A stretch of 63,931 nucleotides of DNA, filler included, from Bigelowiella natans CCMP2755 (taxonomy: Eukaryota > Protista > Cercozoa): NCBI GenBank assembly GCA_000320545.1. It is 6 parts of 6 records of this genome, joined end to end, with 100 filler letters (N's around TTAATTAATTAA, not from the genome) between each part and the next. Parts side by side here need not be neighbours in the genome. Positions count along the whole stretch, not along the records: positions 9,246 to 34,834 come from ADNK01002147.1; 5 more parts are not named here. The stretch is one strand, 5' to 3'. How positions within the stretch are numbered: position 1 is the stretch's first letter; the number at the start of each line of letters is the position of its first letter. Positions 16,282 to 30,931 of this stretch are shown here, piece after piece. The notes under the pieces were generated by a model that was not told where the DNA came from, ran no database searches, and saw only the letters and a program-made list of their open reading frames with translations. A program made the translations under genes and the position numbers.

Positions 16282-17843
16282 TGTCTCAAGTGTGGGATGT
16301 ACTTTCAACATACAAACGTCTTCCTTTTTCCCACAAATATAGATGATGATCGCCTGGGTGGTAGTTTGACATTTCGCTTTGCTTGTCCTGTAACCGTCCT
16401 GCAAGTAACAATGGTCGATATTGATGACGAAAACGTTGGAACGGTGAGTTTTAGTTTCTAGAAGTTTTGTACTTTCCTTTTTTTGTAATTTCTTTTCCTC
16501 TTCCCCCCCCCTACCTTCTCAAATTTGATCGAACCCACTCGCCTGTTTTTGAAAGATAATGTGCTACGATGAGAACGATATTAAACTTGCTAGTGTCCCG
16601 ATCCCGAATGAAGGTCCTCGCAGAAATTTAGAACTGAGCAAACCATACGATAAATTGCACGCACGAAGCTGCCTTGTGAAACCTACCAAAAAGAACATGA
16701 GTATCAAAATTCTAAAGTCTCATTGAAATATCAGGTGAAAGTTCAGTGAACAAGCTTCCAGTCGTTGTCGCAAGCGTCTCCACAATGAGGATAGCTCTAA
16801 GGTCCTCTGGCGCCGTGGCACGGATCAAAATTCGAGTAGCATCTCCTGGGGGACTAACTGCAGCACCAATCCAAGAAGCTGTCGCGACGAGTAGTCCAAC
16901 AGTCAAAAAAACCACTTCTCCTTCCGTTGGCCTTTCCTCTTTGAGCCCCACGACAGTCTTTCCGAATAAAACCAACGTCCCGGTAGCAGCCCCCTCCTCA
17001 TATTCTCCTTCCACAGACGTTCCTACTCAAAGCCCAGCTACAAACTCGCCCCTCACATACTTTCCCTCTCCTTTACCCACTAAATTTCCGAGTGCGAGCC
17101 CATCGACAGAGACTCCCATCTCCCTCTCCCCATCCTCAAAGTCTCCTCATTCCGTGGGCCCTGTGACGGTGGGGCCGGCAACGAGTGCACCTTCGTCTTT
17201 AAGGCCAACAACACACCCGAATACCGTCTCGCCCAGAACGGACTCCCCCACGCCTACTCCCACACGCTATCCGACCAACAGGTTTTAGTTGCAGGGCATG
17301 TGAAACAGTATATGTTCTAGGGTTTGGTTTGATTCGATGGAGCAGGCTAGTAGAACGGAGACAAAGAGGAGAGAGAAAAAAATGCATCGTCCAATCATTG
17401 TATCAGCTCTCACTACCTTACGCACGTTGGTACTGTACTTGAGTTCATCTGTCTTTATTAGCCCAAGCACTATCGTCCCGACGTTGTCGCCCTCGTTTTG
17501 CCCAACTGGAAGTCCAGCAACGGCCAAACCCTCGATCAGTCCTTCAACTTGGAGTCCCTCCTCCTTTGCTCCAACCGTATCACCGAGCCAAACTCCGTTG
17601 ACCTCTATTCCTTCGACTTCCCCATCCTCTCGAGTCCCCACTCCGAGTACGACAAGCCCGTCCGCAGATCTGCCGATTTGCTTCGGAGAATCGCTTCATT
17701 GCCATGGAAATGGATATATCTGTGCGCAGAATTATTTTGCGAGGTGTTCTGAGGGTTCGTACATCTTTTCCCAGTATCGAGACTGTCAGAGCTGCACAAT
17801 CGACTCCGAAACGAACGCTCCTATACTCATTGATAACTGCTAG
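15438..17843 (+). CDS. Secreted protein: signal peptide, beta-rich extracellular domain, P/S/T mucin-like stalk, C-terminal Cys-rich module
   Basis: MRLLFLLLLSPLPAFS leader. Exons AVIFDSNG..DVDL..GNLVIIQD / DDDRLGGSLTFRFACPV..VDID / SSGAVARI. Then SPT/APT-rich repeats and a CHGNGYICAQNYFARCSEGSYIF..CQSC tail. Confidence 0.75.
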
Positions 17844-17853
17844 GTCTTATCCG

Positions 17854-17923
<70 letters not shown>

Positions 17924-18115
17924 GCGTCCAACTTAATTGCATTTGATCTTCGGTTCTATTAGTCTGACTAGTATAGCTAGTGGCACGGCGCCCGGAAGAT
18001 CTAGAGTTGTGCGTACATGCGTAAAAATTATAATATCTAAAACAATATAGTTTATATATGTCTATGTCTAAAAATAAATATGCTGCATAGTCCATTATTC
18101 AAATATATAAATATT

Positions 18116-18155
<40 letters not shown>

Positions 18156-18895
18156 TTATATACATCAGTTCACGTGTGGGCTGACGCCAGCGCTTGCATT
18201 GTTTGATACATAAAAATAAGTCGATCAATGAAGTCGCAGATCGAAGCATGTAGCACTGGTCTAGTGGTACGCCACACTACGCACGAGAACTAGATATGTT
18301 AATATATATGCGCAGTACAGCTCGCCTATGCTAATCCAGACAAAATGTATATGGTCTACACAATAGGGATGTATATATGCTCATGAGTCAGGTAGCTACA
18401 GTGCTTAGGATACATGTATATCAATCGTTCGAAGATGTCTAGATGTTCCCGCAGACTCCGCACAAATCAGCTAGCAGCTTATCTAGAGCTTGCATCTTAC
18501 GACATGGCAAGAGGGTGCATATAAGAGCCACAACAGTTATTTTTTAAACAGTATCTAAATGTGCAACGAAGCCTGGCCTACTAGCTAACTAGCTATCACT
18601 GCAGCAAAAATAATTATATTGTATCATTGTATCGGATAGCGCTGCTGATGAGCACATATTAGCAACATACAGAGCTGCGGCGCAATTTAGCTTCTAGACT
18701 TTGAATTCAGATGACATAAAAATGAGGAGGTACACAAGATCGAGGGACACAAACGCGCTAAGCTTTTACATACGATCCCGTAAGTCAATAAATAATGCAT
18801 AGCCATATTGCTAACATATTCCAAACAGAAATAGCTCGTTATTTGATCCTATGCTACTATGTTTTTCCTCGTTCCTCGACTTCCTTTTCTTCGAT

Positions 18896-20224
18896 TTACC
18901 ACGAGTAAGTAAAGCCCTTGCTTCCGGAAGAAGGAGGTGCCTGGTATCCTCCTCCGCCCTGCTGCTGAGTTTGTTGAGGGGAGGCCCAGCTCTGCTGGCC
19001 GTAGCCAGGTGCTGGTCCGGAATTAGGAGGCTGCTGATAGCCACCGTAGGATTGCTGTTGCCCATAAGAAGGAGCTGAAGCAGAATTGAAAGCCTTGCCA
19101 GGGCGAGAGGCGAGGAAGCCCATGCACTGAACTTGCTTGATATTATCGAATCCGAGTACGCGGATGAATGAGTCTGGATTGTTCTGCTTGCACTCGGCAA
19201 TTTCACGCATAACGGCTCCAGCGTCAGTTGCTCCAAACATGGGCAGTTTCCACATCGTCCAGTAGCGCCCATCGTAGTATCCTGGCATGCGGCTGTGCTC
19301 GCGGAAGATTTGCCCCCCTGATATTTACGATAATTGGCATGAATGGGCGATATTGAAATCGTATCTAGGTGAAGTATGTACATATAGAACACACATATGC
19401 ATGTATGAGTTTGTGTGTTTTGATTCATGTCTAAATTTTGTGCTACAATAATAATGCATCATGTCACCATTTATATTGTGATATATGGATAATAATTCAT
19501 CCATGTTTACAACACACATGTACCTTTATCAAACTCTACACATGGAATGAGACCATTTTGGATCATGTAGTTAATCTGGGCGGCGATATCTTGCTCGGTA
19601 AATACGTTGGTGTAGGACATCGTTTCGTACTTGAGATTGTTTGCAGGGTCGACAACCTAAGTGGGTGTTAGAATCATTACAAAATATTGTAAGGTATCTT
19701 TATTAGGGTGAAAACAGGAGATATCGTAACCGTCTCCCCCCCAAATCGAAAGGTGATATGTTATAACCGATGCCTCTGATACAAGCTAGCAAGAGTTAGA
19801 AAATTACTTTTATAAGCATACCTCTTCACAATAAGCGTTAGCGATTGCCGAGCGGAAGGTGGGTGCAGGAGACATAGTACGTGCAGCAAAGGAAGTTGAC
19901 ATTGCTGCTCTGGTTGCGACTGGAGCCCCTAGCTGCTGGCTGCTTGGTCCCATGGAAAGAAGGCATCCAAAGGCAATGACGAGAGCCACGTTGGCGAAGA
20001 CGCTGAGGGATTTTCAAAGAGTCAGCAGGTTAGCGAACTGTGATACATGTAAACTAAAACGACGATTTTAACAACGCTTGAAATGTCTTTGTTTTAATTT
20101 CATCGTGATTTCCGCGTAGACTCGAGTTCCCTCTAAGTGATTTTCTCACTCAACACCGATCTGCTTCAACCCTCCCCACCCATTCCCCTTTGTATACGCA
20201 CATAGTAGAGAGGGAGAGCTTCAT
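18896..20224 (-). CDS. rbcS: Rubisco small subunit (form IB, nuclear, bipartite plastid leader) with 67-aa low-complexity C-terminal extension; 252 aa
   Basis: Four phase-compatible GT-AG exons: 20202-20224, 19822-20002, 19524-19656, 18896-19317. Motifs [48 protein letters not shown]. Leader [25 protein letters not shown] followed by an S/T/A/R-rich transit-like segment. Confidence 0.96.
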
Positions 20225-28790: not shown

Positions 28791-30931
28791 ATGGCTACTA
28801 GTTCGCCTACCACCGCAGCCTCTGTGGTCGCTGCAGACCTCGCTAAACTTTCAGCCAACGCAGATCAGATCTGGATCTTGGTATGCACTAATTGGGAACT
28901 CATGTTGTTGAGATTTCGGGCTACATTTGTGTTAAAGACATGCATTGTTTGGACAGTTATGCGGTTTCCTTGTGTTCTGGATGCACGCTGGGTTTTCCAT
29001 GCTTGAGGTAAGAAACTGCTTCCTTCTCCAGATATATCTTCTCTGTTTTCAACCGAGGTTGTGGTGCGGTGTGTGGTGCCTAATTCATACTCCAGGCAGG
29101 GTCAGTTCGTCAGAAAAACACAGTGAATATCTTGTTCAAGAATGTGGGAACTATTTGCATTGGTGCAATCATGTACTTCATCTTTGGATTTGCTTTCGCA
29201 TACGGATCAGATGGAGCGGTAAGCACTCAATACATTACACGTTGCTTCCTCCCTCTCACGCTCGTAAACAACCTACCTACCAAGATGAACTCATTGTCTT
29301 GTCTACATTCGTTCTTTTCACTATAATTCCTCAGAACGGATTCATCAGTTCCGGAGACTACGCTCTAGTAGATTCCCTGAACGATAATAAGCACAATTGG
29401 TTTTTCCAGTTCGCTTTCGCCGCTACCGCCTCAACCATTCTTTCCGGGGCAATTGCTGGTCGTGCAAAGGTGAGTGAATGTACCTTCCCATCCTAATCTC
29501 TGCGTCCTTAAGAAAGCGAAATTTGCTCGAAATATGCCTTATCTGTCTCTAATATCTTTAACTTCGTATCAGCTCGAGGCTTACTTCGTTTGCTGCGCTG
29601 TTCTCACTGCTTTCGTCTACCCCATTGTGTCACACTGGTAATTATCTCTTTTTTGTATTCTTCTGACCGACATGTTTTCACTCGAGTACCAACCTGTCCT
29701 GTCTGCAGGGTGTGGGACAATGACGGGTGGCTCTCTGCTTTCCAGAAGCCTGAAGAACGTATCGGCTACAGCCAGGATAAGAACACTTGTGGTATGATTG
29801 ACTACGCGGGTTCGGGAGTCGTTCACTTGACTGGAGGTGTTGCTGGACTTGTTGGAACAATAATGGTCGGCCCTCGTACCGGTCGCTTCGAGAACCCAGA
29901 AGCATTCGCTGGCCATAACTACGCGCTCGTTGCTATTGGTGTGCTCATCCTCTGGTTTGGATGGTACGGGTTCAACTGCGGTTCTACCCTTGCATTTGAC
30001 GGACAAGTTGCTTCGAAGGTTCTTCCGCTTCTGATTCATATGTTGTCCGTGCCATTTATGACTGGAGAACTTTTTTTTTTTTGCAGGTTGCTGTCACTAC
30101 CACGCTCTCTCCTTCCGCTGCTTGTATCACCGGAATGCTCGTGCAATATGTAACTTCTAACTAGCACTTGCCTCTTCGCTCCTCTCCGTTATTTCTCGAA
30201 AGCTCACACAAAGTGCGGTTTTTCTTCTCTAATTCCACAGGCCATGACCAGAAAGTGGGACATCACCATGGCTCTCAACTGTATTCTTGCTGGACTCGTC
30301 TCGATCACCGCGGTAAGAGTGTTATTCCTACGTTGAACAGGCGTTGAGTATGAACTCAATTTAATTTGTATACAATTTTATTAGGGATGCTCTGTTGTTT
30401 CTGACTGGCATGCAATCTTTATTGGACTCATCGGTGCTTTGGTTTACATGGGAGCTTCCAAAGCCATGGTTGCTATGCAGCTTGACGACCCAGTTGATGC
30501 TGTTGCTGTGCACGGAGCATGCGGGTAAAATATAAACTCTATGTGGCACAATATGTATATCAAACAAAGAGTGACTACCAACTATTTCTCACGTCTGAAC
30601 TTCTGGTTCCATCAGTCTCTGGGGAGTTCTTAATGTCGGAATTTTCGCTGAGGCAACTGAGATCAAGAATGCATACTCCTGCCCAGACGCAGAAGGAAAT
30701 GGAACTGGTCTCCAGTTCGGAATTCAGCTGGCTGGTGCTCTTGCCATTATCGCCTTCGTTGGCACTTGTTCCTTCATTATGCTGGGTGTCGTCAAATTGA
30801 CCATTGGACTACGCGTCTCTGCTGAAGAAGAAAAACTTGGACTCGATGCATCCGAGCATGGGGCAAAGGCATATGAGCTAGGCCAAGTCCAAGGCGACGC
30901 GAAAGCACAACCTGCTGCACAGAACGTTTAA
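28791..30931 (+). CDS. AMT: Ammonium transporter (Amt/Mep/Rh family, AMT1-like); 10 exons
   Basis: [88 protein letters not shown]. Both pore histidines are present. Confidence 0.96.

Follow-up and report, generated by a model that had tools for sequence, protein, structure and literature searches.

The stretch of DNA analysed here (the window) comprises 63,931 nt, filler included, and was joined from parts of the genome of Bigelowiella natans CCMP2755; all coordinates below are positions along its whole length. Its minus strand carries a four-exon gene for the Rubisco small subunit, RbcS (exons at 20224–20202, 20002–19822, 19656–19524 and 19317–18896). The gene encodes an ordinary small subunit of the green type (form IB), preceded by a leader made up of signal and transit peptides and followed at the C-terminus by an extension, a tail of 67 amino acids (aa). 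A first-pass annotation of the sequence had singled out this tail as a possible condensation module of Rubisco in an alga with a secondary green plastid, and both the gene and the type of host were correctly recognised. The features of the gene are listed here in the direction of transcription.

20202–20224, minus strand: exon 1, with the start codon at 20224–20222, coding for MKLSLST and the first two bases of an Ile codon; splice donor GTGCGT
19822–20002, minus strand: exon 2, bipartite leader, a signal-peptide-like hydrophobic stretch followed by a transit-peptide-like stretch and ending ...AYCEE; boundaries from spliced contigs
19524–19656, minus strand: exon 3, N-terminal part of the RbcS domain (VVDPANN...EFDK); Pfam PF00101 positions 1–34, E 6.6e-08
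19100–19317, minus strand: first part of exon 4, remaining RbcS domain to ...GFLASRP; PF00101 positions 32–97, E 2.8e-22; splice acceptor TATCAG
18899–19099, minus strand: C-terminal tail, 67 aa, Q/G/S/P/Y-rich, an in-frame continuation of the last exon and colinear with the core in transcript contigs
18986–19084, minus strand: tail unit A (tail residues 6–38), containing SYGGYQQPP and ending GYGQQSW; from tail self-alignment
18899–18991, minus strand: tail unit B (tail residues 37–67), containing GGGGYQAPP and ending GFTYSW; alignable with the single-unit tails of the paralog and orthologs
18899–18916, minus strand: terminal motif G-F-T-Y-S-W, the best-conserved element of the tail, invariant in 8 aligned tails (Bigelowiella, Norrisiella, Chlorarachnion)
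18896–18898, minus strand: stop codon TAA, from translation
18742–18895, minus strand: 3' untranslated region, with a poly(A) site near 18742; some transcripts extend to 18671

The three introns (199, 165 and 206 nt) are all of the GT..AG type. The four-exon product is identical to P0121, the 252-aa JGI Bigna1 model 55284 of Bigelowiella natans. P0121 and its cluster-mate P0005, a complete open reading frame (ORF) from an MMETSP transcript, were retrieved by a protein search with the intronless paralog described below as query, and the exon 1 product is the N-terminus of both. The leader encoded by exon 2 can be aligned with the leaders of other chlorarachniophyte RbcS. Both parts of the RbcS domain score above the curated PF00101 cut-off of 27 bits (32.9 bits for exon 3 and 79 bits for exon 4). 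An alignment with chlorarachniophyte and streptophyte RbcS has 36 invariant columns, and the conserved core motifs are present. RbcL was not found in the nuclear assembly of B. natans (91.4 Mb in 3736 contigs).

On the translation of 18896–19315 (minus strand), PF00101 matches residues 6–72 (E 2.8e-22) and ends at ...FLASRP; the frame then runs on for 67 aa to the TAA, just as the first-pass annotation had read it. Its hand count of the tail was reproduced by script, with 51 of the 67 residues being G (13), Q (13), S (11), P (8) or Y (6) and with no D or E. There are two K and no I, L, V or M. The tail is hydrophilic (grand average of hydropathy –1.22) and weakly basic, with an isoelectric point (pI) of about 9.2 as against about 4.9 for the acidic core. 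Ten residues are aromatic (positions 4, 12, 18, 21, 33, 38, 52, 63, 65 and 67 of the tail), and five of the six Tyr sit within the [S/G]-Y-[G/Q] units that had been pointed out. The claim that the aromatics are regularly spaced did not survive the count: the gaps between them are 8, 6, 3, 12, 5, 14, 11, 2 and 2 residues, a range of 2–14. The resemblance to the sticker-and-spacer grammar of FUS-type domains holds in part. Composition is FUS-like, but the spacing is irregular and conservation is concentrated in two blocks while the rest drifts. From its sequence, the tail looks more like a spacer with a terminal short linear motif than like pure FUS-type grammar.

The tail is predicted to be intrinsically disordered, which supports the first-pass interpretation. 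In an AlphaFold2 model built on a 29-sequence alignment the core is confident, and the predicted local distance difference test (pLDDT) score stays below 40 throughout the tail (33–39), where neither helix nor strand is formed. An origin of the tail from a microsatellite, already denied at first reading, or from another tandem repeat can be dismissed, as neither TRF nor a repeat finder detected a tandem or microsatellite repeat in 18850–19150. At the protein level, however, an older kind of repetition can be recognized. Alignment of the two parts of the tail (residues 6–38 and 37–67) scores 68 as against 32 +/- 6.6 for shuffled tails, and only 1 of 1000 shuffles scored as high. A GGY-Q-x-PP-x-SG block is present in each unit, whose last residues follow the pattern G-[Y/F]-...-S-W. 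Judging from this self-alignment, the tail arose by an old internal duplication, and its two copies of a roughly 30-aa unit have since diverged. The duplication doubled the sticker-like motifs.

The tail is part of the mature mRNA. RNA runs were chosen for mapping if they contained roughly half of the words sampled from the 1.8-kb stretch, a fraction equal to the exon share. Contigs from three runs belonging to three different studies (X1, X2 and X7) were informative. Those of X2 (985 nt) and X7 (929 nt) run uninterrupted from 18671 or 18703 to 19316 and so cover the 3' untranslated region, the tail and the core. Both skip 19317–19522 and 19655–19819, and X2 in addition skips 20003–20201, linking 20202 to 20002. 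Two overlapping contigs of X1 show the same pattern, and contigs of all three runs span 19523–19654 with both neighbouring introns skipped. Contig ends across the runs fall at 18742, 18703 and 18671. A fourth study (X21, RNA-seq of 2026, raw and 3'-biased reads) covers 18722–19087 on the strand of the gene only, with poly(A) junctions near 18742 and loose runs of T before 18742. None of the transcript contigs and reads mapped has a splice joint inside the tail. Removal of the tail by splicing, named in the first-pass annotation as an outcome that would overturn its proposal, is thus rejected, since the contigs are colinear through the tail while the introns are removed.

The transcript-derived protein P0005 also carries the tail. 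It differs from the genome at tail residue 44, with Ala in the transcript and Thr in the genome, which reflects either variation between strains or alleles or a mistake in the assembly. Raw RNA reads show two further differences, 19247 T>C and 19256 C>G. Both match synonymous codons of the paralog, and we rejected RNA editing or allelic variation: the reads stem from the paralog and were cross-mapped where the motif is best conserved.

When the 91.4-Mb assembly was searched in six frames with the exon-4 protein and PF00101, only one other RbcS gene was found, on contig C86. This paralog, RbcS1 (AAP79188, Q7XYK6), is intronless and encodes 229 aa. Its tail of 47 aa contains the block SYGGGYQAP and ends in SGGFTYSW, as the window gene does. 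Both RbcS genes of the genome are therefore tailed and eight tails are to be expected on each Rubisco holoenzyme of eight large and eight small subunits (L8S8), in line with the figure of up to eight given at first reading. Two RbcS copies have been detected by plastid proteomics of B. natans (PMC3542566). Trypsin is expected to cut the tail itself into two fragments, of about 60 and of 6 aa, and standard proteomics would therefore miss it.

The two genes are old paralogs, and their comparison is informative about selection on the tail. Nei-Gojobori proportions of synonymous (pS) and nonsynonymous (pN) differences are 0.83 and 0.12 in the core and 0.69 and 0.31 in the alignable tail. Synonymous sites are saturated, and despite this both the SYGG(G)Y block and the tail end are retained. 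The last six codons show three synonymous differences and no nonsynonymous one. By these measures, the tail is evolving faster than the core yet is constrained, and the constraint is strongest in the last residues.

Tails with the same end occur in other chlorarachniophytes. The sequence S-G-(G/K)-F-T-Y-S-W is invariant in several Bigelowiella strains, B. longifila, Norrisiella sphaerica and Chlorarachnion reptans. The aligned tails measure 37–67 aa, and two elements are conserved in them, this end and the internal SYGG(G)Y-x-x-P block, while the middle drifts in both length and sequence. The search for orthologous tails with conserved Tyr spacing, suggested in the first-pass annotation, did yield such tails, but it is the blocks and the end that are conserved and not the spacing. 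In a maximum-likelihood tree built from the cores alone, the tailed RbcS of Bigelowiella and Norrisiella form one clade (support 98/97) with the window gene near its base, and the GFTYSW tail may have a single origin. One apparent ortholog was not counted. P0003, from a Tara metatranscriptome (ERR1719198), has an N-terminal half of Partenskyella type and a C-terminal half of Bigelowiella type with the tail, and is probably a chimeric assembly.

Amorphochlora amoebiformis has three kinds of RbcS end: a short one (...SGGGGYSW), the tail of its RbcS1 with three SSSFG units, and a tail of about 95 aa rich in Q, S, Y and H. The sequences of these tails are other than that of B. natans, yet they too place aromatics in a G/S/Q background. 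The SSSFG units of the RbcS1 protein (P0132, ABW97363) resemble FG repeats and its sequence ends ...GGFTPGKWTRPVE; the promoter of this gene drives published GFP-fusion vectors. In the paralog with the longest tail (P0145, AAMO2058_000728300, L008:5088-5720 and 6078-8472), core and tail are encoded in a single exon. The annotated model adds two distant exons, the product of which looks helical and coiled-coil-like by eye and would be reminiscent of the STAR extension of hornwort RbcS, an appearance that depends on the gene model. With the first of the two distal junctions left unspliced, the open frame enters a PSHPI repeat instead.

Other members of the group have short ends. Short ends only are found in Lotharella, Gymnochlora and a second isoform of Chlorarachnion, where they often finish in an aromatic residue, and ends such as ...GY, ...GF and ...YSW occur in RbcS of the relatives. 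The RbcS of Partenskyella glossopodia, a species that lacks a pyrenoid (PMC10927497), ends in ...RPGQ and has no tail.

Outside RbcS we did not find the tail. A tail-only, word-based database search returned RbcS only, a profile search of the tail against 1.84 billion representatives gave 0 matches at E <= 0.001, and the ESM Atlas offered only similarities with a template modelling (TM) score < 0.4 to disordered regions of unrelated proteins. Searched against all six frames of the B. natans genome, the tail recovered only itself. The pattern FTYSW followed by a stop has four matches in the genome as compared to five for the reversed control. Of the four, two belong to the RbcS genes and the others are chance sites outside any open frame, which led us to reject the idea of other pyrenoid proteins sharing this end. 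No description of the tail came up in full-text searches of the literature on extensions of RbcS in chlorarachniophytes or Bigelowiella, on pyrenoid linkers and on RbcS-STAR. It is not mentioned in the pyrenoid proteomics paper or in two 2026 reviews, and the supplements of the iron-response paper have no RbcS entry. The protein sequences became public in 2003, and an annotation of the gene exists.

The surroundings of the gene were also inspected. Just downstream of its 3' end, in an AT-rich intergenic stretch, are two long (AT)n microsatellites (17857–17925 and 18118–18155). Two adjacent ORFs of 180 and 168 aa at 16746–17843 (plus strand) are very rich in Ser, Thr and Pro and have a mucin-like look, with no Pfam match for either. 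Some 9 kb away from RbcS, at 28945–30153 (plus strand), two ORFs match the ammonium transporter family PF00909 (better E 3.6e-29) and are probably exons of an AMT gene.

Taken together, these observations lead us to propose, with a confidence that falls a little short of even, that the tail is a built-in, eight-fold linker of Rubisco, formed by a disordered aromatic spacer and a conserved terminal sticker. The L8S8 holoenzyme would display eight tails, four around each pole. The variable spacer would provide reach and weak aromatic cohesion, and the SYGG(G)Y block and the terminal GFTYSW would be the stickers that attach to a neighbouring Rubisco or to its tail. In that way Rubisco could form the pyrenoid matrix by condensation while needing hardly any separate linker protein, or none. 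In this scheme the persistence of the tail on the mature protein, the binding and the condensation are all steps that we infer. We favour a composition-driven role for the spacer because the independent tails of Amorphochlora keep aromatics in a G/S/Q background and not a sequence, and a specific docking step because the tail end is invariant. W- and Y-centred stickers are known to mediate Rubisco binding in EPYC1, PYCO1 and SUPA1. There is also precedent for condensing Rubisco through one of its own subunits, as the account in PMC13655443 has RbcS-STAR doing so in hornworts and a weakly dimerising sfGFP fused to RbcL doing so in tobacco. The lack of a tail in the pyrenoid-less Partenskyella also speaks for the proposal, as does the fact that PPAP28, the only linker candidate in chlorarachniophytes, is reported to be specific to A. 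amoebiformis.

A more specific version of the proposal appears doubtful to us, although it deserves to be stated. The Rubisco of Bigelowiella, Norrisiella and Chlorarachnion would be self-condensing without a dedicated linker, with GFTYSW docking in trans on a neighbouring holoenzyme. Such docking may re-use the site where the ancestral, short aromatic C-terminal end of green-type RbcS packs in cis.

Several facts weigh against the linker proposal. The short-ended Lotharella and Gymnochlora bear pyrenoids, and together with the short Chlorarachnion isoform they indicate that a long tail is not needed for a chlorarachniophyte pyrenoid. The correlation between tail and pyrenoid offered by Partenskyella is that of one species. 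A. amoebiformis has tailed RbcS plus a separate linker candidate, PPAP28. AlphaFold2 shows no confident docking of the terminal motif in cis on the RbcS core. The confinement of tail and motif to RbcS, both in the genome and in the databases searched, leaves no shared network of Rubisco-binding motifs such as that of Chlamydomonas. Finally, the tail could be processed off the C-terminus, its persistence at the protein level being part of what the proposal assumes.

Alternatively, the tail could be an adaptor, with GFTYSW as a short linear motif that binds another component of the plastid or pyrenoid and recruits or anchors Rubisco without cross-linking it. The component bound could be a scaffold, one of the pyrenoid GTPases, Rubisco activase or a tether to membranes at the edge of the pyrenoid. 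Conservation concentrated in an end of 6–8 residues, behind a variable spacer in tails of 37–67 aa, is what a short linear motif carried by a disordered tether typically shows, and pyrenoid-matrix proteins conserved across chlorarachniophytes do exist (e.g., the GTPases PPAP3, 6 and 8). However, the conserved GTPases are also present in Partenskyella, which has neither pyrenoid nor tail, and the aromatic-rich composition kept in the unrelated Amorphochlora tails suggests that the spacer is more than an inert tether. We regard the adaptor role as unlikely, if more probable than the other alternatives. Less probable again is a role in biogenesis, be it solubility, passage through four membranes or holoenzyme assembly, or the related idea of a C-terminal propeptide, cut off or without a role in the mature enzyme. 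That tail-less RbcS suffices in other pyrenoid-bearing chlorarachniophytes would fit this explanation, as would the faster evolution of the tail compared to the core (pN 0.31 vs 0.12) and the possibility of C-terminal processing. An extreme C-terminus that is invariant in two old paralogs and in at least three genera is, on the other hand, hard to explain for a passive or discarded segment. Chlorarachniophyte plastids are not known to use a C-terminal import signal, which we also count against it.

The remaining explanation denies the tail any function and sees in it either neutral read-through of low complexity or an artefact of annotation. Its composition is indeed of low complexity, and 67 open codons would arise by chance in about 4% of cases, (61/64)^67. 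Yet the tail is transcribed and unspliced, it is conserved in a paralog at synonymous saturation as well as in other genera, and it contains no repeat at the DNA level. We give this explanation hardly any weight, and consider it effectively refuted by the transcripts, the selection between paralogs and the ortholog alignment. Should the tail turn out to be processed off or irrelevant to condensation, it would still be a conserved, lineage-specific extension of RbcS.

Rubisco is condensed into pyrenoids in ways that differ by lineage, and achieving this condensation is the first step in engineering pyrenoids into crops. Before 2026, all known solutions to the problem were separate linker proteins; RbcS-STAR of hornworts has since shown that an extended RbcS can achieve it. 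If the built-in linker proposed here proves true, it would supply a linker candidate for most chlorarachniophytes. It would also be a very small module (47–67 aa) on an RbcS that has been described as streptophyte-like (PMC10927497), which would make it attractive for plant engineering, and it may suit the RbcL of crops.

Comparison with known systems helps to place the tail. It shares with EPYC1, CsLinker, PYCO1, SUPA1 and the candidate PPAP28 a disordered nature, repeated stickers that are often built on W or Y and are separated by spacers, a mildly basic pI and a presumed function in cross-linking Rubisco. These are independent polypeptides with 5 to 90 repeats, whereas the B. natans tail, a candidate linker, is fused to RbcS and has one or two units per chain, and its multivalency would come from L8S8. 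It does not belong to the class of repeat linkers, understood as separate proteins with at least three Rubisco-binding repeats, since it is a fused segment with two diverged units, and we detected no sequence similarity between the tail and the repeat linker proteins. The SYGQ-rich domains of FUS, EWS and TAF15 are similar in other respects, namely the dominance of G, S, Q and Y, the scarcity of charged and aliphatic residues, the [S/G]Y[G/Q] units, about one aromatic in seven residues and the predicted disorder. The tails are shorter (47–67 aa as compared to about 200) and have more proline, they are mounted on a rigid octavalent enzyme, and they have a strictly conserved end that those low-complexity domains lack. 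Tail-only searches gave no indication of homology to them.

Closer in architecture are two other extended small subunits. The RbcS2 of Ulva (bioRxiv 10.64898/2026.07.16.738900) is also of the green type, and its annotation includes a C-terminal extension that is disordered. Its expression is about 3% of that of RbcS1, its gene model is doubtful and the authors judge a role in condensation unlikely, whereas transcripts support the B. natans tail and both RbcS genes of the genome have one. The hornwort precedent to which the first-pass annotation had referred is a sound one as far as it is described in PMC13655443. RbcS-STAR of Anthoceros agrestis (Robison et al., 2026, via PMC13655443) is likewise a nuclear green-type RbcS in which a C-terminal extension lets Rubisco be its own linker, and on that description both it and the B. 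natans tail arose independently of linkers of the EPYC1 type. According to the same account, STAR works through coiled coils formed by two predicted alpha-helices, and of the several RbcS only one, a specialised isoform, carries it. The B. natans tail is, like STAR, a C-terminal extension, reaching 67 aa past PF00101, and AlphaFold2 predicts for it no helix and none of the coiled-coil character of STAR. Compared by description, it differs from STAR in being rich in Q, G, S, Y and P, in having a conserved aromatic end and in being carried by all RbcS genes. If our proposal is correct, the tail would be a second, independently evolved built-in Rubisco linker and one of a different physical type, disordered and equipped with aromatic stickers and a terminal motif in place of the coiled coils of STAR, and the fusion of linker and enzyme would be a recurrent evolutionary route.

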